Sequence record: ON529850.1
Length of the DNA: 64,000 nucleotides
Direction: 5' to 3' (one strand)
Under the pieces are notes generated by a model. It was not told the origin of the DNA. It saw nothing but the letters and a program-made list of their open reading frames with translations, and searched no databases. How positions within the stretch are numbered: position 1 is the first letter of the stretch; each line of letters starts with the position of its first letter. Shown in pieces: positions 1 to 43,338 of this stretch. Made by a program: the position numbers and the translations under genes.

Positions 1-830
1 TTGTCGTTGACCTGACCCAGGTCGTCGACTTCCATCACGCCGTTTTGCAGGCCGATGACGCCCGAGTCGCCCACGTTCACGACGTAGATCGAGGTGCCAA
101 CGGGAGCGCCGCCACCGGGGCAGGCTTCGTTGAAGTCGATCACTTGCGTGTTCGTGTCGTCGTAGTCGGTGGTCAGGATCGGCAGGTCGTTATAGAACGC
201 GACGCGCGTTCCATATTCGTCCTTGTCCCAGGTGATGAAGCCGGCGACCGAAGTCTGGCGCGAAGCGGCCGACAGCAGGTTGCGCATGCGCTTCGACATG
301 ATCAGGTGCGTGGCGCCGTCGACAGCGTCGATGGCTTCGTCCAGCACTTGCAGCGACAGAGCGTCACCGCCAGCGGTGGCGCCGGCCGGGATCAGCTGAT
401 CGCCGACGATGCGCTTGCGCAGGCCGTCGAATTCACGCGGATCGGCTTCCGAGTCGCCGTTGATGATCTTGCCGGCCAGGAAGAGCGACAGGGCCTTGAC
501 CTTCATCTTTTCCTGCATGGTGCGGATGTTCGCGCCATGAGTACGGATGAGGGCCTTATCGACGTCCAGGTCGCCGCCGACGATCTTCAGAACTTCGACT
601 TGCGAGTTGATGACGCCGACGCCGTTCCCGTAAGCTTCGTTGAAGCCACGGAAAGCCACGCCCGGCAGCTGGCCTTCTTGGGTGTAGGTGTACGAACCAC
701 CCGGCACGTCCATGAAGGGGAGGACCTTCAGGAGGTCCGGATAAGCGAACAGCTCGATGATCGCCGAGCGCTTCACTTCGTCGTTGCCCATAGCCAGGTC
801 AGAGGCTTCGAGCAGGGTCAAGGCAGCCAT
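1..830 (-). CDS. Major capsid protein, N-terminal part (runs off left edge; absent from ORF track)
   Basis: Manual translation MAALTLLEASDLAMGNDEVKRSAIIELFAYPDLLKVLPFMDVPGGSYTYTQEGQLPGVAFRGFNEAY...GGDLDVDKAL...EFDGLRKRI; GAGGAG RBS; resembles phiCbK-type HK97-fold capsid proteins. Confidence 0.9.
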   Translation of the reverse strand, partial: MAALTLLEASDLAMGNDEVKRSAIIELFAYPDLLKVLPFMDVPGGSYTYTQEGQLPGVAFRGFNEAYGNGVGVINSQVEVLKIVGGDLDVDKALIRTHGANIRTMQEKMKVKALSLFLAGKIINGDSEADPREFDGLRKRIVGDQLIPAGATAGGDALSLQVLDEAIDAVDGATHLIMSKRMRNLLSAASRQTSVAGFITWDKDEYGTRVAFYNDLPILTTDYDDTNTQVIDFNEACPGGGAPVGTSIYVVNVGDSGVIGLQNGVMEVDDLGQVND

Positions 831-1191: not shown

Positions 1192-1986
1192 TTACAGACG
1201 CGAAGCGCGATCGCCGTTCGCCAGGGCCAGCTTGTCGGCCGCCGACAGGTTGCGCATCTCGGCCTGGGTCTTGCCCAGAGCGCCGCGCTGCCCGCCGTCC
1301 GCACCGCCGCCAGCCGCGCCGCCGCCGTGAGTGCCCTTGAAGTAGTGAGGCGCTTCGTCCTTCAGCTTCAGAATCCACTCCTTGGGCGTCAGCGGCGAGC
1401 CGCCGTCAGCACCGTACAGTTGCAGATCGCCCTGGTAGGCCAGAACGCGACCATCATCGCCGGCGCGCCAGACTTCCGTCGCGCGGTGCAGGATGTCGCG
1501 GACGGCCGCCGGAGCGACGCCCAGTTCCGGGTCGATCAGAGCGTCCTTGATGGCGGTATTCACCAGGGTGCGCTTGTAGGTCGATTCCAGATCGGTGGCC
1601 TTGGTCTTCCAGTTGGCGCCTTCCTTCTGGGCGGCGCGAATCTGGTCCTCCAGGACCTTCTTCATATCTTCGGTCCGGCGGATCACTTCTTCTTCGATCC
1701 GGCGGCTGTCGGTCAGCTGACCATCCTTCACGCGCTGCGACGTCGCGCGCAGTTCAGTCAGGTCGTTGACAAAGGCGGTGGGGTCTTCGCCGACGATCGG
1801 CTCCAGCGTCTCCACCTTCTTCTTCAGCTCGTCGCGTTCCTTGACGAGCGTGATGTTGGTCTCGCGGAATTCGTCCAGTTTTTCCTGGGCGACGAGGTTG
1901 ATTTGGACCTTGTCCCCATCAGCCTTGGCATAGCTGCGGAGCGGCTCCGGAATCTGATCCAGAGTGTCGAAAGTGCAAATGGGCAT
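1192..1986 (-). CDS. Capsid scaffolding protein (probable start MPICTFD)
   Basis: Directly upstream of the capsid gene; long charged coiled coil, Gly-rich linker, short C-terminal helix LSAADKLALANG. Confidence 0.7.
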   Translation of the reverse strand: MPICTFDTLDQIPEPLRSYAKADGDKVQINLVAQEKLDEFRETNITLVKERDELKKKVETLEPIVGEDPTAFVNDLTELRATSQRVKDGQLTDSRRIEEEVIRRTEDMKKVLEDQIRAAQKEGANWKTKATDLESTYKRTLVNTAIKDALIDPELGVAPAAVRDILHRATEVWRAGDDGRVLAYQGDLQLYGADGGSPLTPKEWILKLKDEAPHYFKGTHGGGAAGGGADGGQRGALGKTQAEMRNLSAADKLALANGDRASRL

Positions 1987-2206: not shown

Positions 2207-2779
2207 TTAGGAAGGCAGTTGTTTCTTTTGGGTCTTGACAGTATTGCGCGACTTCCGTTCAATGACGAAGCCGTAACGCGCCATATCCGAGGCGCTCTTT
2301 TCCTTGTGACAGGGATCGGTGCAGAGTATCTGGACGTTCTCTGGTTCCCAGAATGACCAATCGCCAAATGCCAGGAACAACGGCACTACGTGATCTGCTT
2401 GCCATTTATCCGACAAGCGATTCCACACCTTCCCGCACTTAGCACATTTACCTTCGTCCCGCAAGAAGACGTGCTGACGCATCACCTTCGGATCGGAACG
2501 GAGCAAGTATTGGTTCACGCACGTCTGGCCGCACCAAGAACGGCGCAGATTCAACGTCACGCCGTCTACTTTAAAAATCTTCACGCCACACCACCGGCAG
2601 TGTCCGGGCGGCTGACGCGTAATTTTCGACGGGTGGGTGCGGTGGTTGTAGGACACAGGCAGTTTGGACCCGCGCGGTTTCTTCGACCGGCGCGGTCGGC
2701 TCGACGCACGGCGTCGGCGGGTAATCGTATTGGCGGTCGTCTTCGGGGGAGATGCGCGCCGCTTTGGGCGGCGGGCCAT
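2207..2779 (-). CDS. HNH endonuclease (start uncertain, possibly GTG at 2656)
   Basis: CxxC pairs and ADHVVP...ENVQILCTDPCHKEK HNH motif. Confidence 0.8.
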   Translation of the reverse strand: MARRPKRRASPPKTTANTITRRRRASSRPRRSKKPRGSKLPVSYNHRTHPSKITRQPPGHCRWCGVKIFKVDGVTLNLRRSWCGQTCVNQYLLRSDPKVMRQHVFLRDEGKCAKCGKVWNRLSDKWQADHVVPLFLAFGDWSFWEPENVQILCTDPCHKEKSASDMARYGFVIERKSRNTVKTQKKQLPS

Positions 2780-2809
2780 CAGGCGTCAGCCGGCTTTCGC
2801 CGTTCGTCT

Positions 2810-3265
2810 TCAGTCATCGGAAAAGAGGTGACGCAGCGCCATCGCGTCCCAGTAGGCATTGTGCTGGACGGCGCCTTCCAGCGAAGTCGGGTAGGATTGA
2901 ACCCGCATCATCTCAAAGGTGAGGTGATGTTTGGCGACCATCTCACCAGGCCCCGTCATGAGCGCTCGGCAGAAGTAGGCGATGTCGTCCGGCCAGTCCG
3001 AGATGATGTGCGGTCGGTCATCCCCCAGAAGGAAGGCGGCGATGGTCCGCGCAGCATCCGCCGGCGTCAAACCCTTCCAGATCGCCAGGCCGTCCGGAAC
3101 CGATTCCAACAACGGCTTGACGTTCTCCTCAACCCAAGGCGTGCAGGGTTGTTCGGCTCGGTCCAGGATGATGTAGAGAGACTTGGCGCCGTCTTGCCGA
3201 ATCAGCGCGAGACTGAGAAGATCACCGCCGAAGCCGTCGAACTCACAGTCGAGAAAATAGTTCAT
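2810..3265 (-). CDS. DEDDh 3'-5' exo(ribo)nuclease, RNase AS-like
   Basis: FLDCEF (ExoI), SDWPDDIAYF (ExoII), HNAYWDAMAL (ExoIII). Confidence 0.75.
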   Translation of the reverse strand: MNYFLDCEFDGFGGDLLSLALIRQDGAKSLYIILDRAEQPCTPWVEENVKPLLESVPDGLAIWKGLTPADAARTIAAFLLGDDRPHIISDWPDDIAYFCRALMTGPGEMVAKHHLTFEMMRVQSYPTSLEGAVQHNAYWDAMALRHLFSDD

Positions 3266-3297
3266 AGGTAATTGTTACAGGTGACGTTCACGGCCGT

Positions 3298-3570
3298 TTA
3301 CGTCAACTTCCCCTTCAGCGCCGCCAGGTGCGCCAGGTTGTCGTGGTGGATGCGGATGTGGTCGAGGAGCGCTTCGTAGGTCGCCAGGGCCTGGAGCCGC
3401 GACGCCTCCACGTCCGAACCGGACACGCGCCCTTTCGTTGGCGTGGTCGTCATCAGCTTGACGTAAGCGTTGTGCGCCAGGGCGTATTCGTGGTTGAGCG
3501 AATCGATGTCGCGTCGAGACGCCGTGGCGTCAGCGATCGCCTTCTTGATCGCGTCTTTGCGTGCACTCAT
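3298..3570 (-). CDS. Hypothetical protein
   Basis: ORF in tightly packed co-oriented run. Confidence 0.6.
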   Translation of the reverse strand: MSARKDAIKKAIADATASRRDIDSLNHEYALAHNAYVKLMTTTPTKGRVSGSDVEASRLQALATYEALLDHIRIHHDNLAHLAALKGKLT

Positions 3571-12891: not shown

Positions 12892-13173
12892 CTATCCGGC
12901 TCGGCCGGGTTTGGCTGGTCGCATGTCGTAGGGGTTGTGCCGCATCCCCAGGGGGATCGTGTCGTTCAACTCAGCCTGCGCCGGCTCGTAGATCGAGTAG
13001 TCGGAATCGTTGAGCACGATCCCGAAAAAGTTCCGGGTGTAGCGACGGTAAAAGGTATGGGCGTGCTTCTCCGTGTCCTCGACGAACGCCAGGGTGCGGC
13101 CCGTCACCGACGCGCCGATCGCGCGGAGTTTATCCACGCCGGTCGGGTTGAGAGTGGCGATGAAACGGGGCAT
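12892..13173 (-). CDS. Hypothetical protein
   Basis: Co-oriented ORF. Confidence 0.5.
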   Translation of the reverse strand: MPRFIATLNPTGVDKLRAIGASVTGRTLAFVEDTEKHAHTFYRRYTRNFFGIVLNDSDYSIYEPAQAELNDTIPLGMRHNPYDMRPAKPGRAG

Positions 13174-13237
13174 TCAGGTATCCTGACACAGAGCGTCAGG
13201 GATACTGACACAGTTCCGACGTTTTGGGAAGTTCGAC

Positions 13238-13849
13238 CTAGACCGTGGTTGCGCGATTGGCGCGCGTCCACTTTCGCAGGTTGGCGTCGAACAGCGCCAG
13301 GATCGGGTAGAGACGAACCTGCCACCGCAGGAAGGCGGCGTATCGCGGCGTCCCTTCTTCGGGATGGAAGTAGACGTAGATGCGCTCGCGCCAGGTGGTC
13401 GGCGGAGACGAGGTGCTGCCAGGGCGGCGTCGCGAATACTTCATCTCCCCGATCGCGCGGAAACCGAGCGCATCCACACGAGCGGTATTCGCCAGGGGCG
13501 GCGTCGGAAAGTGGGGGTGCACCTGTCCCGAAGACATGTGGTTGGGGCGCTTGGTTTCCGACGTCATCCAGTCCGGTCGCAGCGGGCCGCGATTACACAC
13601 CGCCGGCTCCGGCGTCGGATGCTGGCGGTGGTGCTGCCGGCGTTTCTCATTCGCCTGATCGAACAGACGTGAAGCGTCCTTGGCGGCCTGGCGCATGTTC
13701 GCCTTGGCGGCGTAGGCGCGCGCGTTGGCCTCCTCCCATTCACGGCGATTGAGGCTGACCTGCTTGAGGTGGAGTTTCGCCTGGGCGTCCAGGGCGTCCG
13801 CGTCGCTCAGAAGCGTCGACTTAACCTTTCCCAGATCACTCATAGTCAT
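13238..13849 (-). CDS. Hypothetical protein (N-terminal coiled coil)
   Basis: Co-oriented ORF. Confidence 0.5.
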   Translation of the reverse strand: MTMSDLGKVKSTLLSDADALDAQAKLHLKQVSLNRREWEEANARAYAAKANMRQAAKDASRLFDQANEKRRQHHRQHPTPEPAVCNRGPLRPDWMTSETKRPNHMSSGQVHPHFPTPPLANTARVDALGFRAIGEMKYSRRRPGSTSSPPTTWRERIYVYFHPEEGTPRYAAFLRWQVRLYPILALFDANLRKWTRANRATTV

Positions 13850-14093
13850 GATCCGCCTTTGCAGCCGTCGTGGTGAGAGTGATGGTCGGGTAGACCTTCA
13901 CGGTGGGAGCGTCCGACGTCGCGACCATCAGCAGGCCGGCGATGCCGGTGCCGACCATGATGATCGCTTCGGCGTGCTCGGGGCGAATGACGTAGCCGAG
14001 CAGTCCCGCCAGGGCGATCAGCCCCAGCCAGGTCGACCGCTCCAGCGCCTTGGTGAGCAGGAAGGTGTAGAGGGCTTTCCAGTTCCAGGTCAT
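13836..14093 (-). CDS. Holin-like small membrane protein
   Basis: ERSTWLGLIALAGLLG...PEHAEAIIMVGTGIAGLL two-TM pattern recalled from small phage holin-like proteins. Confidence 0.5.
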   Translation of the reverse strand: MTWNWKALYTFLLTKALERSTWLGLIALAGLLGYVIRPEHAEAIIMVGTGIAGLLMVATSDAPTVKVYPTITLTTTAAKADHDYE

Positions 14094-14794
14094 TCCGTGA
14101 CTCCCATGGTGATTTCGACCATATCATCGGCGATCCGACGGGTGTCTTCGTCCAAGAGCGCCGCGACGGTCTGCTCATCGGTGGTCAAGGGCCGGGCGCC
14201 GTTCGCCAGGTTCAAGCGATCCGACGCGGACATCCGGCGAGCGGCGGCGACCGCCTGTGCAGGCCCCGTGTCGGTCGGGCGCACCGTCGCTTCGGGCGTT
14301 CCGGTCAGAACCCCGCGCAGCATGGCGGTCGCCTTGACCCGGCGCGCGTCGGCCTCATGACGAAGCGTCGCCATCTTGGTGCGCACGCGGTTGAACTCTT
14401 CGCGAGTGTCTTCCCGCGACATCTCCAACTTCACCGCGTCCGAGAGGTAGGTCATCGCGCGGGTGATGATGTCTTCCGCTTCCTGGAAGGTGTAGACGCC
14501 GCCGGGGGCCGCTTGAATCGAGGCGCGCGCCGCCGCCGCCGAGAGCTCCTCTTCCAGCTCCGCGATGCGTTGATGCGCCTGCTCCAGCGCCGTGGGCGAC
14601 GCTTCCAGGAAATCAACCTGGTAGCGGCGCGTCAGATCGGAGATTGCGCGTGATGCGCTGGGGGTGCCTTCTGGGACGGTCACATCGTGGCCGGCACCCG
14701 CCAGGGCTTGCGCCAGAACGGCGATGAGGGTGGTCTTGCCGCTGCCCTTGTCACCCGTGACGGTGACAGTGACGCGGGCGATGTTATCGGTCAT
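14090..14794 (-). CDS. Protein with N-terminal Walker A, coiled coil and scaffold-tail-like motif
   Basis: VTGDKGSGKTT; RRMSASDRLNLANGAR. Confidence 0.6.
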   Translation of the reverse strand: MTDNIARVTVTVTGDKGSGKTTLIAVLAQALAGAGHDVTVPEGTPSASRAISDLTRRYQVDFLEASPTALEQAHQRIAELEEELSAAAARASIQAAPGGVYTFQEAEDIITRAMTYLSDAVKLEMSREDTREEFNRVRTKMATLRHEADARRVKATAMLRGVLTGTPEATVRPTDTGPAQAVAAARRMSASDRLNLANGARPLTTDEQTVAALLDEDTRRIADDMVEITMGVTE

Positions 14795-14795
14795 T

Positions 14796-15152
14796 TCAGA
14801 ACCAGATCAGGAGGTTTGCATTGCGGAGACGCGGATGCACCTCCAGGTTGAGCCAGTCGACCAAGCGCTTGCGCAGCTCTTCAGGGCCATCGCCCAGGTC
14901 GGGGTCTCTGGCGGACCAGCGCACAAGCGCGGCCTCGTAGACCCGGCCCACAACAGCGGAAGAATCGAACGCCGACACGACATGAAACAGGGCGCCGTCT
15001 CGGGGATCGGACGGGCGCGGCTCGCCGATGACGACGTAGAGCGCCTGCCGCACCATCACAGCGACCGGCCCAGGATGAACCCGATGAGGCCGGCCGCCAG
15101 GATGGGTGTTCCGATCAGGATCGACAGTGTCGACAACCAATGACGAACACAC
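14796..15152 (-). CDS. Hypothetical protein
   Basis: Co-oriented ORF abutting downstream gene. Confidence 0.45.
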   Translation of the reverse strand: MCSSLVVDTVDPDRNTHPGGRPHRVHPGPVAVMVRQALYVVIGEPRPSDPRDGALFHVVSAFDSSAVVGRVYEAALVRWSARDPDLGDGPEELRKRLVDWLNLEVHPRLRNANLLIWF

Positions 15153-15868
15153 CAGGCGAAAAGGCGATTGCCCCCTTCATCCAGCCAGTCGAAATTGGTG
15201 TCGTTGATCATGTCAGTTCGAGCCGAGGCCTTCAAAGATGGAGCCGATCAGCTCCAGGCCGGATTCCAGGATGGCGAAGACCCAAAAGCCGTCCCAGAAA
15301 CTGGTCGAACGGTCCGGGCGCCGCTTCGTCCGGTCCGTCGTTTTGGTGAAATCGACCACGTCAGAAGAAGACGCAGCCGGAGACCAGGCCGCACAGGAAG
15401 ATGACGGCGGCGGCCGACTTGGTCTCGCGGGCGATGGTGGCGGCTTGGCGCACAGCGGCTTCGACAGCGGCGACGATGGGGTTGGTGGAGTTCATGGTCA
15501 GGGGTCCGTTAGGTTTTGGGTTCGGGGGTAGAGGTGAGGTAGTCGGCGAACGTCTTGGCGGTCGTGACAATCTCTTCGGCCGAAGAGCCCTTCTCGGCAT
15601 GATAGCGCAGCGCCATCTCAAGGGCCTTCTCGTGAACGATGACGTAGTGGTCGCTCATTTCACTTTCTTTCGCGGTCGCCCGCGTTTGGGGGGTGGAGGG
15701 GGAGCGACCGCCGGCGTTTCGTCCGGCGATCGTTTCGTCAACAAGGCGAGGTCCTCGTCATCCAACGCCGGCAACCCATACGGGTCGTCCGACATCAAAT
15801 CCCGATCGTCCAGGTCGTGGATCAGATCGTTCAGGTCGGCGTATCTGCGCGGCATCGGCGTGGAGGGC

Positions 15869-16273
15869 TTAGTCCTGCTTGAGGCGGTAGATCGGCAGAG
15901 GCTGGGCCTCGGCGCCGTAGACGGCCGCATGGAAGACAGCGGTGGTCATCTCGACCACGCCTTTCTCCAGCAGCTCCGGCAGACGGAAACCGCGCACGCG
16001 GTGGTCTTCGTGGTCACGATCCGCGAACGAACGCCACTGCTTCTCGGTGGTCCAGTCGGCGCCGGTGACGGACAGAAGACGCATCAGGGCGACGCAGGCC
16101 TTGAGCTCGACATTGGTCAGGCTGTCGGTCGACAAATGTTCCGGCAGGGCGACCAGGCCGACCTTGTCTTCGCCAGGACCGATCGACGGGAAGGAGACGG
16201 TTCCAGGAGCGCGAAGCGGTTGGGCGGCGCCGGCCGCGCCGGGACCGGCGGGGCGGTAGGTTTGTTCAGTCAT
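15869..16273 (-). CDS. Hypothetical protein
   Basis: ORF downstream of portal. Confidence 0.5.
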   Translation of the reverse strand: MTEQTYRPAGPGAAGAAQPLRAPGTVSFPSIGPGEDKVGLVALPEHLSTDSLTNVELKACVALMRLLSVTGADWTTEKQWRSFADRDHEDHRVRGFRLPELLEKGVVEMTTAVFHAAVYGAEAQPLPIYRLKQD

Positions 16274-16390
16274 CGGGTACTCAGCACTTCTTGCGCTTCA
16301 TGGGGAGAGGGGTCTTCGGAGGCGCCGGTTTGGCCCGCTTGGGCTTCACCGGCTTGGCGAACGGCGTCGCGGTCAGGATGTCGATCGCCA

Positions 16391-18361
16391 TCAGGCGGTA
16401 TCCGTCCCACTACGCCGCGCCGGCGGCGGTTGCGGCGCTTGCTTGGCCTTGGCGGCCGTTGCGGCGGACTTGCGCTGGATCGCCAGCTGCTGCTGCTCCG
16501 CCTGGGTCGGCGGGGCCTGCTCCGGATCGCCCAGCTTGCGGGAAGCCGACACGGTCGTGGAGCCGAACTGCTGCGCCAGGGCGAACTTCTCTTCTTCCAA
16601 CGCGCGGGCGCGTTCTTGCAGCTCCAGCTCCTTGGCCTGGAAGGCCGCCTCACGCGCCAGGCGCACCTGCTCCAGCTCCTGAGCCCGGCTGACGTAACCG
16701 CGACGCATCGCTTCGGCGTCGGGTTTACCGATGAAGGAGTTGGGGTCTTCCATCTTGGCGCGGAAGTCTTCCAGGGTCATGGTCGTGGAGACCACGCCGT
16801 TGCGCACCATGGCTTCGTAGAAGACGTCGATCGGAATGTCGCCTTCCTTGAACAGCTGCTGGATCGCGCGGATCGCGCGGGCGTCCAGGGTGGTCGACAG
16901 GAAGGTGGTGTCCAACTCGTAACGCAGCAGGGCGGTGTCTTGCAGCGGCACGTCGCGGAACAACAGCCAATACCGCATCAAGGTCGTCATACCCTCTTCC
17001 AGGGCGGTGATGACGTTGAGCAGCAGGCTCTGTTCGTTCGCTTCGCGGATCGACGACTGCTGGTTGGATTCCGACGTCGACTTCGACGAGCCGGGCATCA
17101 TACGACCGCCGATCGCGGCGATCTGTTGCTCCTTCTCGTCCAGGGCGCGCTCCAGGGTCTTGAGACCCTCGCCCTTGAACTCCAGGATGCCGGGGATGCC
17201 GTCCGGGGTGGTTTCCCACACCGTACCGGGGCCGATGTGATAGTTGGCCGAATCCGAATCCGAGGTGCCCGGAACATAGTAGGTCGGCAGGGCGGTGTAG
17301 AAGCGACCGTATTCCAGCTCCGCATAGGTGCGGTAGTGCTTCAGATTCAGGTCGACGATGTCGAGAAGCGGCGGCTTTTCGCAGTCCGCCGCATTGGAGA
17401 AGGCGCCGAAGAAGACGACCGGCAGGAATCGCAGCGGATTGCCGCGCACTTTCGGGTAGGTGACCTTGACCGGCTTGCTCAGCGGGTCTTCCTTGTAGAC
17501 CTTCTGACAGTAGACGCGCGATCCGTCTTCCTGAACCTCCAGGACCAGTTCACGATACTGGGTGACGTAGGTGTAACCGCCCGTCGCCGGCTGTTCGGCC
17601 GGGGTGCGGGACGTCACCGGCATCAACTCGCCGTCGGCGGTGCGGATCATCGCCGTTTGCGGACGCTTGCGTCGGCCGCGCGCTGGCTTTTCGTCACCGA
17701 TCCAGGGATTGTCGGCGCTGGCGCCCGGCGCCACGCGCACGAACTCACGCAGCAGAACGCGGGTCGGGACATAGAATCCCTCGACCTCTTCGATCTGCCA
17801 GTCGATGATGTTCTCGGCCGTATAGCCGACGACGTAGGGCTGCGGCTTCTTGCCGACCGGCGTTTCATCGACATCCGCCAGGGCCAGGAAACGGCCCATG
17901 GCGATCTGCTCGGCGGCGATCGTCTTGGCGAAGGATGCGTGGCTGGTGCCGTCTTTGGCGAACCGCGCCAGCGCCGGCAGGAGCTTCTCACCCTGGTCGA
18001 TCACCACCTCCGCGCCGCCGGCGTCGCGGGAGACGACGCGGCCGGGCTGCGGCAGGTGACGAATGACAGGAGGGCGACGGAAAACCTGCCCGACCATGCC
18101 GGACAGCGTCTGGGCCGCCATGTTGTAGAACACCGCCCGATGCAGATACTGCTCGTACTGATCGTCGGTCGAACCTTCCATCGGGCGCAGGTAGACCGCA
18201 CCCTTACGCTTGATCTCACGCTCGCCCGCGAGCGCGTCCCTGATCTTCTGCCAGTCCTCCGCCCAGTAGCTGTATTCCGGGTGAGCGACGATCGAGCTGA
18301 AAGCCGCAATCGCGCGTTTCGTCCGGCCGATATTGGTGGAATTGGGAGTGGTGCCGGCCAT
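16391..18361 (-). CDS. Portal protein (DUF4055-type), probable start MAGTTPN
   Basis: HPEYSYWAEDWQKIRDALAGEREIK...YL.RAVFYN, PPLLDIVDLNLKHYR..A.LE.G...TALPT. Confidence 0.85.
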   Translation of the reverse strand: MAGTTPNSTNIGRTKRAIAAFSSIVAHPEYSYWAEDWQKIRDALAGEREIKRKGAVYLRPMEGSTDDQYEQYLHRAVFYNMAAQTLSGMVGQVFRRPPVIRHLPQPGRVVSRDAGGAEVVIDQGEKLLPALARFAKDGTSHASFAKTIAAEQIAMGRFLALADVDETPVGKKPQPYVVGYTAENIIDWQIEEVEGFYVPTRVLLREFVRVAPGASADNPWIGDEKPARGRRKRPQTAMIRTADGELMPVTSRTPAEQPATGGYTYVTQYRELVLEVQEDGSRVYCQKVYKEDPLSKPVKVTYPKVRGNPLRFLPVVFFGAFSNAADCEKPPLLDIVDLNLKHYRTYAELEYGRFYTALPTYYVPGTSDSDSANYHIGPGTVWETTPDGIPGILEFKGEGLKTLERALDEKEQQIAAIGGRMMPGSSKSTSESNQQSSIREANEQSLLLNVITALEEGMTTLMRYWLLFRDVPLQDTALLRYELDTTFLSTTLDARAIRAIQQLFKEGDIPIDVFYEAMVRNGVVSTTMTLEDFRAKMEDPNSFIGKPDAEAMRRGYVSRAQELEQVRLAREAAFQAKELELQERARALEEEKFALAQQFGSTTVSASRKLGDPEQAPPTQAEQQQLAIQRKSAATAAKAKQAPQPPPARRSGTDTA

Positions 18362-18750: not shown

Positions 18751-19467
18751 TCACCAGCTCGGGTGTTCGCCGCACAAAGGCGTTTGGGACAGATCGCGCA
18801 CCCCGCCGCGTCCAGGGCCGCCGACATTGATCACCCCGACGACGCGTCCCGCGCCGTCCAGGACCGGACCGCCCGACATGCCCGAATGGGCTTCACCGCT
18901 CATGATCGCCTGGTGCAGCGCCGGCTGTGAGGCGTTGCGCAGCGGCATGTCCGCGTAGACGCCGGTGAAGGTAAAGCGCTGAAGCGCGAAATCGCGACCA
19001 TAGGCCCAGCCGACGCCCAGATATTCCCGCCCACGACGCAACCCGCCGCAGTGCAGCTCCAGCTGGGCCGGCGTCGGTAGAGGCACCGCCAGGACCGCCA
19101 GGTCCAGCGCCCGGTCAAAATGGAGCGGGGTCATGGGCTTATCCTGGAACACGCACTGGGCGGCGCCTTCCACGACGTGCGCCGCCGTCAAGACGCGACC
19201 CGGCCCGATCACCGATCCGGTGCCGGTCACGACCCGCACCTGCAAGCGCTGAAGCACCGTCAGCGTCGAAAGCGGCGTATCGGCCGATACGCCATCGGGC
19301 AGAACCAGGCACAGGATCATGCCGGTGCTGTTGAGGTTAACGAAGTAGGGTCCGGAGGCGCGGCCGACCAATCCCATGGGTTCCGCCTGGACGGGCGGCG
19401 CGGACAGGGTCGACGGAAACGTCAGACACAGCAGGAAGGCTGAAAAGGCGGCGGCGAGACGACGCAT
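18751..19467 (-). CDS. Trypsin-like serine protease with signal peptide
   Basis: LTAAHVV, DLAVL, GMSGGPV catalytic triad; MRRLAAAFSAFLLCLTFPSTLSA leader. Confidence 0.9.
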   Translation of the reverse strand: MRRLAAAFSAFLLCLTFPSTLSAPPVQAEPMGLVGRASGPYFVNLNSTGMILCLVLPDGVSADTPLSTLTVLQRLQVRVVTGTGSVIGPGRVLTAAHVVEGAAQCVFQDKPMTPLHFDRALDLAVLAVPLPTPAQLELHCGGLRRGREYLGVGWAYGRDFALQRFTFTGVYADMPLRNASQPALHQAIMSGEAHSGMSGGPVLDGAGRVVGVINVGGPGRGGVRDLSQTPLCGEHPSW

Positions 19468-22485: not shown

Positions 22486-22680
22486 TCAGTCCCAGCCCAG
22501 CGCGCGGCGGGCCTCGGCGCGAGCGGCGCGGCCATGCAGCGGGCGCGAGGCGACGGCCTCGCCGTCAAGGTCCATGTCGTCAAATTGGCGGGCGCGTTCG
22601 CGGCGGTCAGTCTGGCGGGCGAAGGCGGCGCGGCGCGCCTCGAAAGCGTCAACGTCATTACGGCGGAAAGTGCGGGCCAT
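22486..22680 (-). CDS. Cassette hypothetical protein
   Basis: Own promoter and terminator. Confidence 0.65.
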   Translation of the reverse strand: MARTFRRNDVDAFEARRAAFARQTDRRERARQFDDMDLDGEAVASRPLHGRAARAEARRALGWD

Positions 22681-42388: not shown

Positions 42389-43200
42389 GCGTCGGGGGCG
42401 TGGCGGGGATAGACCTTCACCACTTCCCGGAAGCCTGCCGCATCCTCGGCGGCCTTAGCCTCCACGATGATCGCCCGGCGATGGCCCGGCTCGGCGCGGA
42501 TCGCTTCAAGGCTGCTGTAGAGGGTCGCGGCCTTGTCCTTGATCTTGGCGATATTGCCGTCGCCGTAGCTGAACAAGAAGACGGTGGTGTCCGCCACCGC
42601 CGCCGCGAACGCCTCGGGGGTGACGCCGCGTTCACGCATCGCGTCTTCTTCCTCGTCCGCTTCGTCTTCGTCGTCGTCTTCCGACGCCAGCAGACCGTCA
42701 TAGGCCAGAAGGTCGGCAATCGCCTCGTTGCCGCGCTCCGACAGAATGTCGTCCAGGCGGCGGCGGTTGTTGACCAGCCATTCGGCGGCTTCCTCTTCGG
42801 TGCCATCGAAACGGTCGATCACGTCTTCGGCGGTGAAGACGGTCGGGGCGGCGCCGGCGAGGCGGATGGCCTCGGTCAGGTCATAGACGCTGATCGCAAC
42901 GTCGATGGCGTAGATGTGGCCGTTGAAGCCGATGCGCTCTTCGGCGAACAGCACGATCTCGACGTCGGACAGGTCGTCCAGGGTCTTGATCTCGTCCAGC
43001 GGCTTTTGCGTGGCGATACCGTAGTCTTCCAGGCCGCTTTGCAGCGACGGGGCGTCGGTGTAGCGTCCGGCCATCCACTCGCGCGCCATCTGCGCCTTGG
43101 CGTCTTCGGCCTCCGCCTCGGTGCCGTAGGGGGCGCCGTCCGGCTCGTAGCCGTTGGCGGTGACGGCCAGTTGATAGAGTTTGATTTTCGCGGTCTTCAT
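42385..43200 (-). CDS. Cassette hypothetical protein (acidic, start MKTAKIK)
   Basis: Conserved leader. Confidence 0.75.
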   Translation of the reverse strand: MKTAKIKLYQLAVTANGYEPDGAPYGTEAEAEDAKAQMAREWMAGRYTDAPSLQSGLEDYGIATQKPLDEIKTLDDLSDVEIVLFAEERIGFNGHIYAIDVAISVYDLTEAIRLAGAAPTVFTAEDVIDRFDGTEEEAAEWLVNNRRRLDDILSERGNEAIADLLAYDGLLASEDDDEDEADEEEDAMRERGVTPEAFAAAVADTTVFLFSYGDGNIAKIKDKAATLYSSLEAIRAEPGHRRAIIVEAKAAEDAAGFREVVKVYPRHAPDA

Positions 43201-43338
43201 GGGGTGTCTCCGGTGTTGCGGTGATCCCCTTCTAGGCCGGGCGCGATGGGGTGTCAACCTCTTTTCTGTAGAAATATTTCCGTTAAGGTTAACGCGAGCG
43301 GATCGCAAAACGCCCGGCCGAAGCCGGGCGTCGGGGGT

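Follow-up and report, generated by a model that had tools for sequence, protein, structure and literature searches.

A scaffold-type helix motif shared by the head scaffolding protein and a mini P-loop coiled-coil protein of Brevundimonas phage Gurke

Short peptides are known from a few model systems to act as addresses in the assembly of phage heads and related shells. The capsid targeting sequence of phage T4 is a short N-terminal tag that directs unrelated proteins (IPI-III and Alt) to the scaffolding core; these are packaged and later ejected, and the tag is removed by the gp21 protease. Encapsulin cargo-loading peptides and the tails of prohead proteases (the C-terminus shared by lambda gpC and Nu3, and the HK97 protease) combine a functional domain with a linker, flexible or variable, and end in a short peptide that binds the inside of an HK97-fold shell. 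In phage 80alpha the last 16 residues of the scaffold form a helix-and-hook on the N-arm of the capsid protein, and the SaPI1 protein CpmB carries the 80alpha scaffold motif (RIIK) and competes for the same capsid site (PMC5644958). Here we have analyzed GURKE_04430, a protein of Brevundimonas phage vB_BpoS-Gurke that contains a motif closely similar to the C-terminal helix of the scaffold of the same phage. Gurke is a siphophage of 321.5 kb belonging to the Dolichocephalovirinae (phiCbK-like), with a prolate head of ~75 x 306 nm (PMC10070969). The DNA examined, termed the window, is the final 64 kb of its genome (record positions 257511-321510 of ON529850.1), and all the genes under discussion lie on its minus strand. 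In blastn, window positions 13000-16500 match the Gurke record with 100% identity.

The Gurke proteins resemble 80alpha gp46 and SaPI1 CpmB in that a short scaffold C-terminal helix is repeated on a second, otherwise unrelated helical protein (dimeric in the case of CpmB). Unlike CpmB, which is the protein of a phage parasite and shrinks the capsid, the carrier in Gurke is encoded by a conserved head-module gene of the phage itself, and has a P-loop domain. The Gurke motif is moreover unrelated in sequence to RIIK, and the capsid binding shown in 80alpha provides an analogy only. Like encapsulin cargo and the prohead-protease tails, the Gurke family has the order domain, linker, short peptide, but the cargo would be a mini P-loop of 65 amino acids (aa) and not an enzyme of known function, and the peptide is internal in the Gurke clade. 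The shared C-terminus of lambda C and Nu3 is a product of nested genes, whereas that in Gurke involves two separate genes 12 kb apart. The T4 targeting sequence is likewise a short peptide common to unrelated proteins as a head address, but neither a cleavage motif nor an N-terminal tag is seen in GURKE_04430. Scaffold C-terminal peptides shared with a second protein (CpmB, lambda C/Nu3) and addressing peptides (T4, encapsulin cargo) are already known; what is new here is the carrier, a conserved phage-encoded family combining a mini P-loop with a coiled coil, together with the motif itself and the lineage. A literature search found no paper describing motif sharing on a mini-P-loop carrier.

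The two proteins and their motifs are located in the window as follows.

14090 to 14794, minus strand: GURKE_04430, 234 aa, with a mini P-loop head, coiled coil, scaffold-type helix motif and C-terminal helix (open reading frame (ORF) and annotation, AlphaFold2 (AF2) model).
14192 to 14239, minus strand: motif RRMSASDRLNLANGAR, residues 186-201 of GURKE_04430, a short capped helix from a Ser N-cap to an Asn-Gly C-cap (helix 190-197 in the model).
1192 to 1986, minus strand: head scaffolding protein GURKE_04130, 264 aa (phrog_206, expectation value (E) 6.1e-36), directly upstream of the major capsid gene.
1207 to 1254, minus strand: scaffold C-terminal motif RNLSAADKLALANGDR, preceded by a Gly-rich linker and ending 4 residues short of the stop.

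The scaffold C-terminus has the sequence RNLSAADKLALANGDRASRL, and the consensus S-x-x-D-[KR]-L-x-L-A-N-G is common to this end and GURKE_04430. An earlier note on this DNA counted 10 identical residues in 16 between the scaffold end and GURKE_04430, and comparison of the two peptides confirms this. BLASTP of GURKE_04430 against the scaffold gives 11/19 identities with E = 0.001, a value that does not survive correction for an all-against-all comparison, and the motif was therefore subjected to four further tests. A regular expression applied to the six frames of the window finds two instances only, in the scaffold and in GURKE_04430. At the level of whole genomes, a scan that the earlier note had proposed, the degenerate DNA pattern for [DE][KR]LxLANG matches the Gurke, Bambus and Domovoi genomes at exactly two sites each, and those of CcrColossus and CcrPW at one, the scaffold; its reversed control gave no matches in the whole genomes scanned. 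A profile made from seven scaffold C-termini, with no P-loop sequences included (profile A3), has the P-loop protein as its sole extra match, with per-genome E values of 7.9e-5 in Gurke, 1.5e-5 in Bambus and 1.4e-6 in Domovoi. There is no extra match to this profile in the Colossus and phiCbK genomes. Lastly, when 50,697 phage genomes were searched by tblastn with the 35 C-terminal residues of the scaffold, matches were confined to Dolichocephalovirinae, the best place in each record being the scaffold gene. A second place is found in three records (Papperlapapp, Kabachok and Domovoi), which we infer to be the P-loop gene. On the results of these four tests the sharing of the motif is real, and not due to chance.

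The relationship does not extend beyond the motif. When alignments of the P-loop and scaffold families were compared using hhalign only 21 columns align (E = 5.7e-5) and the similarity ends at the edges of the motif. This indicates a shared short linear motif and not domain homology. A search of GURKE_04430 against PHROGs gave no match to phrog_206 and nothing else of use, and there is no full-length homology with the scaffold. The description of the two proteins as otherwise unrelated was therefore correct. A third sequence of similar type occurs in GURKE_04570, a 64-aa ORF that has ARLTAAN in a Pro/Ala-rich context (window 22587-22640, minus strand), kept in a metagenomic relative (L017:189-242). 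We considered it as a further carrier of the motif, but the match is weak and was judged a chance hit to the relaxed motif.

A HMMER scan of 1.8 billion representatives provided 29 relatives of GURKE_04430. Among isolated phages, homologs are found in seven Brevundimonas giant phages, with much shorter ones in CcrColossus and CcrPW, and in no others. The motif is kept in all the Brevundimonas giant-phage homologs and in a metagenomic relative, and the sequence A-A-R-x-L-S-A-x-D-K-L-A-L-A-N-G-A is near-unchanged in nine further representatives, each from a different 50%-identity cluster. For 12 non-redundant members the mean pairwise identity is 0.80 in the 12-residue motif core (of the type LSAxDKLALANG), 0.66 in the P-loop domain and 0.19-0.41 in three other segments. 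The motif core is thus the most constrained part of the family. The distant relatives (P0015-P0032, ~27-43% identical overall) have only the mini P-loop in common with the Gurke protein, with middle segments that vary in length and sequence. A helix of the form [ST]-x-[DE]-[KR]-L-x-x-A-N is present at or near the C-terminus in 12 of these 18 (CcrColossus gp049 not being counted), usually followed by an acidic tail. The motif is followed by 33 residues in Gurke and by 60-90 in the Bambus group, and is at the C-terminal end in most distant members. Loss of the motif among homologs, which the earlier note had named as part of what would refute a packaging tag, is therefore not seen: the motif is kept in the near homologs and, as a recognizable core, in most of the distant ones. 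Nine of the distant sequences (P0016, P0019, P0021-P0024, P0026, P0027 and P0029) have a terminal dipeptide Gly-Cys after the DKLxxAN helix and acidic run.

These sequences indicate that the ancestral layout of the family was head, variable linker and C-terminal helix, the helix having become internal in the Gurke and Bambus clades by way of a C-terminal extension. Such a layout contradicts a recent copy of the motif; as judged from the homologs, the motif is ancient in the P-loop family. The proposal that it had been copied onto GURKE_04430, if taken to mean a recent transfer, is not borne out, given the age of the motif, the confinement of the similarity within its edges and the difference in codons. 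In Bambus and Domovoi all eight codons of DKLALANG are identical between the scaffold and P-loop genes, but the codon class of the Ser and the flanks differ between the two genes. In Gurke four of the ten shared motif residues use different codons in the two genes. Recent DNA copying or gene conversion was rejected on the Ser codon class, the flanks and the Gurke codons, and codon bias can explain the identity of the DKLALANG codons.

Scaffold and P-loop proteins with related ends are found as cognate pairs in uncultured phages. In a 158-kb contig P0019 ends with DKLAAANLALM and an acidic tail, and the scaffold encoded 12 kb downstream ends DRLALANGDKGPRL. In a 63-kb contig P0017 ends in a doubled core (DKLMRANLNKLMRANL) and its cognate scaffold ends DKLALANGDKPAKL. 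Thus in these two phages the scaffold ends with DRLALANGDK or DKLALANGDK and the P-loop protein with DKLAAAN or DKLMRAN. The doubling of the core at the C-terminus of P0017 (L048:4282-4971) is in tandem (KLMRANLNKLMRANL). CcrColossus gp049 and CcrPW gp052 are short P-loop proteins that lack the motif. Their immediate upstream neighbors, gp048 (L005:1421-2473) and gp051 (L008:1498-2472) respectively, are coiled-coil proteins that end with DEKLALAN (TVDEKLALANLQSME). In Colossus the motif profile gives gp048 as its only significant extra match (E = 3.8e-7), one other place scoring E = 0.075. In Colossus and PW, head and address are carried by separate, neighboring genes. Comparison of Colossus gp048 with the C-terminal half of the P-loop family showed weak coiled-coil similarity, with an hhalign probability of 32%.

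The following elements of GURKE_04430 precede the motif.

14600 to 14773, minus strand: mini P-loop domain, residues 8-65, with the Walker A sequence and invariant K20, H36 and E64.
14732 to 14755, minus strand: Walker A sequence GDKGSGKT, residues 14-21, matching GxxxxGK[ST].
14303 to 14488, minus strand: long single helix of coiled-coil type, residues 103-164 (AF2 model, VIA-align).

G19, K20, H36 and E64 are invariant across 29 sequences, and so the P-loop site looks functional. E64 ends a hydrophobic stretch V-x-F-x-E that is Walker-B-like; the predicted local distance difference test (pLDDT) score of the model is high there, yet DSSP called no strands. The N-terminus had been described as having a lone Walker A. 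The Walker A sequence is indeed present, but it is not alone, since H36 and the Walker-B-like E64 are also invariant in the 29 relatives. Searching Pfam gave 39 P-loop matches, all of which fall under the gathering scores and lie mostly in the Walker A region, within the first ~60-120 residues; the best is AAA_16, with 27.3 bits compared with a cut-off of 32.6. A profile of the P-loop family matches only Walker A segments among PDB sequences, the best of them from ABC proteins. At ~65 aa the domain is far too small for a canonical NTPase core, and no class is assignable. In the ESM Atlas the same fold is found in stand-alone viral proteins of 70-92 aa, and the domain resembles the first part of NTPases of the ParA/SRP54 type. 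The stand-alone phage mini P-loops (the ESM Atlas clusters, a 66-aa ORF of CcrBL9, and P0027) share the predicted fold and the Walker A of GURKE_04430 over its N-terminal 65 residues, but they lack its coiled coil and scaffold-type helix. Such ORFs occur in CcrBL9 (L028, record ~43130-43329, ~66 aa) and Bajun (L029, ~113105-113500, ~130 aa), with neither coiled coil nor motif, and both phages are without the full family.

The structure of GURKE_04430 was modeled with AF2. Using a three-sequence alignment the pLDDT was 42 and the model was unusable, and so the model made from the 29-sequence alignment was used, for which the mean pLDDT is 86. It has helices at residues 20-33, 47-52, 69-94, 103-164, 177-187, 190-197 and 205-231. 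These are arranged as a compact N-terminal part (~8-65), helices 69-94 and 103-164, a linker, the short helices 177-187 and 190-197, the second of which is the motif, and a terminal helix. Foldseek of this model against PDB and BFVD returned nothing at E<=0.001, and VIA-align matched generic coiled-coil chains only (Z 6.3-6.8) over residues ~100-166. The coiled-coil stalk probably makes the protein a dimer or trimer.

The scaffold helix is conserved well beyond the phages that have a P-loop protein. It is kept, following a Gly-rich linker, in phiCbK (MSAAERLAIANG), Bajun, CcrBL9 and CcrSC, and beyond the subfamily in the scaffolds of Sphingobium phage Lacusarx (MTAAQKLALANS), Citromicrobium phage RXM (LTPEQKLALANGG) and Mesorhizobium phage Cp1R7A-A1. 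Among the scaffold ends the helix is universal and the residues beyond it are variable, and the portion in common with the P-loop family is exactly the universal helix. The profile of the scaffold family found no related solved structure in the PDB. CcrBL9 also encodes gp121 (L022:1501-2106, 201 aa), a truncated scaffold paralog that lacks the C-terminal helix, its gene lying a short way upstream of that for the full scaffold gp122 (2522-3343), and several other Caulobacter phages have a second scaffold-like place in tblastn.

The gene for the putative partner of this helix lies at the start of the window.

1 to 830, minus strand: major capsid protein, the first 276 of 311 aa, the remainder preceding the window (phrog_212, E 1.3e-69; Pfam GP7, E 4e-7).

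The major capsid proteins of the clade share ~90% identity, which fits with a peptide that is nearly invariant. CcrColossus encodes a second, diverged major capsid protein at record positions 17501-18286, and a short capsid-like fragment scores in CcrBL9 at 273995-274183. Gill et al. 2012 reportedly described the second copy in Colossus. Co-occurrence of a motif carrier with a second capsid-protein paralog was considered and rejected, because the paralog is present in Colossus only and not in Gurke or Bambus.

Taken with its conservation, the motif is strengthened as a candidate functional address common to the scaffold and the P-loop protein. We suggest that GURKE_04430 is a head-assembly accessory protein, either a cargo-linker-address protein or an auxiliary scaffold, that would bind the partner of the scaffold C-terminus, probably the capsid protein. 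We assign this reading a probability of about 0.5. The motif helix would bind the receptor of the scaffold C-terminal helix, which by analogy with P22 and 80alpha is likely to be the capsid protein, and the copy on GURKE_04430 would bind the same site. In keeping with the capsid protein as the proposed common partner of both helices, the scaffold helix is placed at the very C-terminus and is preceded by a Gly-rich linker, as is usual for scaffold ends that bind the coat. Together with the scaffold, GURKE_04430 might thereby enter the prolate shell as it grows, or be recruited to its inner face. Its P-loop head could then act at the shell, as an auxiliary or regulatory component of the scaffold or as a packaged internal protein. 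The layout of conserved head, variable linker and C-terminal helix leans towards a cargo tag, regulator or auxiliary scaffold and fits a pure competitor less well, although the sequence fits a co-scaffold, a regulator and a packaged internal protein alike. The targeting tag suggested in the earlier note has thus gained from the depth of conservation of the motif and its place as the most conserved segment, while binding to the capsid is argued by analogy.

Several observations weigh against this interpretation. phiCbK, Bajun and CcrBL9 build prolate heads and have the scaffold motif, but scanning them with the motif profile found no second carrier besides the scaffold. A motif-bearing P-loop protein is therefore not a general requirement. 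phiCbK lacks the P-loop gene, and its virion proteome of eight proteins (PMC3556154), the only one in the clade, does not bear on GURKE_04430. Across eight phages compared there is no covariation of the scaffold motif with the P-loop motif that would provide positive support, although this is expected if the receptor is a capsid protein that is ~90% conserved. The motif is internal in Gurke, 33 residues from the end, whereas it is terminal in the scaffolds. The 'hook' that follows the helix also differs, being GDRASRL in the scaffold and GARPLTT in GURKE_04430. Moreover, the capsid protein is preferred to the portal or protease as target of the scaffold helix by analogy only.

Two genes upstream of GURKE_04430 encode possible alternative partners.

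16391 to 18361, minus strand: portal protein (DUF4055; annotation), the conserved upstream anchor of the GURKE_04430 neighborhood.
18751 to 19467, minus strand: trypsin-like (Trypsin_2) peptidase gene, directly upstream of the portal gene in Gurke and most related contigs.

The transcription order in Gurke is trypsin-like peptidase, portal, seven small ORFs, GURKE_04430, ~30 mostly small genes, scaffold and major capsid protein. Every locus recovered, including those on metagenomic contigs, has the order portal, six or seven small ORFs and P-loop gene, with the P-loop gene ~1.3-2 kb downstream of the portal gene. The scaffold and capsid genes are found 8-12 kb downstream of the P-loop gene wherever the contig extends far enough. 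The peptidase gene precedes that of the portal in most loci, but it is not beside the portal in the 158-kb contig (L040) that carries P0019. The Trypsin_2 peptidase is a candidate prohead protease, of a class that is unusual among tailed phages.

Given this gene order, the helix might instead bind the portal or the trypsin-like peptidase, so that GURKE_04430 would act at the portal vertex, for example in head initiation. The constant proximity of the P-loop and portal genes, with the peptidase gene mostly just upstream of the latter, agrees with this, and the scaffolds of P22 and phi29 are established as contacting portals too. Yet the portal in the contig of P0019 has no peptidase gene beside it, the motif is present in neither the portal nor the peptidase, and a C-terminal helix past a Gly linker is the classic coat-binding layout. 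We therefore consider a receptor at the portal vertex unlikely. Another potential receptor is the mini P-loop itself, in which case the protein would serve the scaffold as a chaperone or release factor under nucleotide control, with its own motif as an internal pseudo-ligand that keeps the protein closed. Most members of the family have the P-loop head and the helix as their two constant features, a Ser N-cap begins the helix as it does phosphate-contacting signature helices, and Colossus carries the two elements on adjacent proteins that could be a pair in trans. But phages that lack a P-loop protein altogether (phiCbK, Bajun, CcrBL9, Lacusarx and RXM) conserve the scaffold motif just as well, so that the primary partner of the motif must be something other than the mini P-loop, and we find this explanation improbable.

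The remaining alternatives dispense with a common partner. The two helical proteins could have converged on a capping-box helix (S-x-x-D ... N-G) with no shared function, the resemblance being structural noise. The motif is a short one, helices rich in Ala and Leu are common in the Gurke genome (63% G+C), and as noted above the pairwise BLASTP value alone would not withstand correction. Convergence nevertheless has to contend with whole-genome profile E values that are significant with no other match, and with a motif that is the most constrained part of the protein. It must also account for the recurrence of the pairing in three phage lineages that diverged deeply, and on another carrier protein in Colossus, and for a scaffold-end query that finds nothing outside Dolichocephalovirinae among the 50,697 phage genomes. 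We judge it no more probable than a mini P-loop receptor. Alternatively, the helix of GURKE_04430 could be the LSGGQ-like signature motif of a miniature ATPase of the ABC/SMC/Rad50 type, its halves split by the coiled coil, and the likeness to the scaffold would be coincidental. The order is suitable, the N-terminal Walker A and the coiled coil being followed by L-S-x-x-[DE]-K-L-x-L-A. The Gurke protein also has a hydrophobic stretch that ends with LLDED and begins ~26 residues past the Ser, near the ABC spacing, and there are weak Pfam matches to ABC_tran, AAA_23 and AAA_29 at the N-terminus, besides the ABC Walker A segments that are the best matches in the PDB. However, LLDE is missing or replaced in P0009, P0011, P0013 and P0014 and in all distant members with a C-terminal motif, the Gly-Gly of the signature is missing, and the C-terminal half has no match among ABC or SMC models. 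A signature motif would also leave unexplained the same 12 residues at the scaffold end, with per-genome E down to 1e-6. This is the least probable of the explanations that we have weighed.

If the P-loop head acts as a switch, GURKE_04430 might be a nucleotide-switched auxiliary scaffold, in which a coiled-coil dimer clamps sites on the capsid protein by means of its scaffold-type helices. Binding or hydrolysis of ATP or GTP by the mini P-loop heads would then time the engagement or release of the scaffold, or help to set the length of the shell in the ~300-nm prolate heads of giant siphophages of the Colossus type. We regard this more specific form of the head-assembly proposal as quite unlikely, but if true it would add a nucleotide-dependent, energy-requiring step to procapsid assembly. 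The candidate address S-x-x-[DE]-[KR]-L-x-[LA]-A-N can be defined from sequence alone. The giant phages that carry it form a lineage with very long prolate heads, the assembly of which has hardly been studied. Should the address bind as we propose, it would give a handle on how scaffold grips shell in the large phrog_206 family with epsilon15-type capsid proteins, and a ready-made tag with which to load cargo into such capsids. The mini P-loop proteins that are widespread in phages would also gain a first functional setting.

The P-loop gene is followed by GURKE_04420 (window 13836-14093, minus strand, 85 aa), which overlaps its stop by 4 nt. GURKE_04420 has two hydrophobic stretches and resembles a small membrane protein, which would be unusual within a head module. 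In Kikimora, Bambus and metagenomic relatives, too, the P-loop gene is followed by a small gene of this kind.

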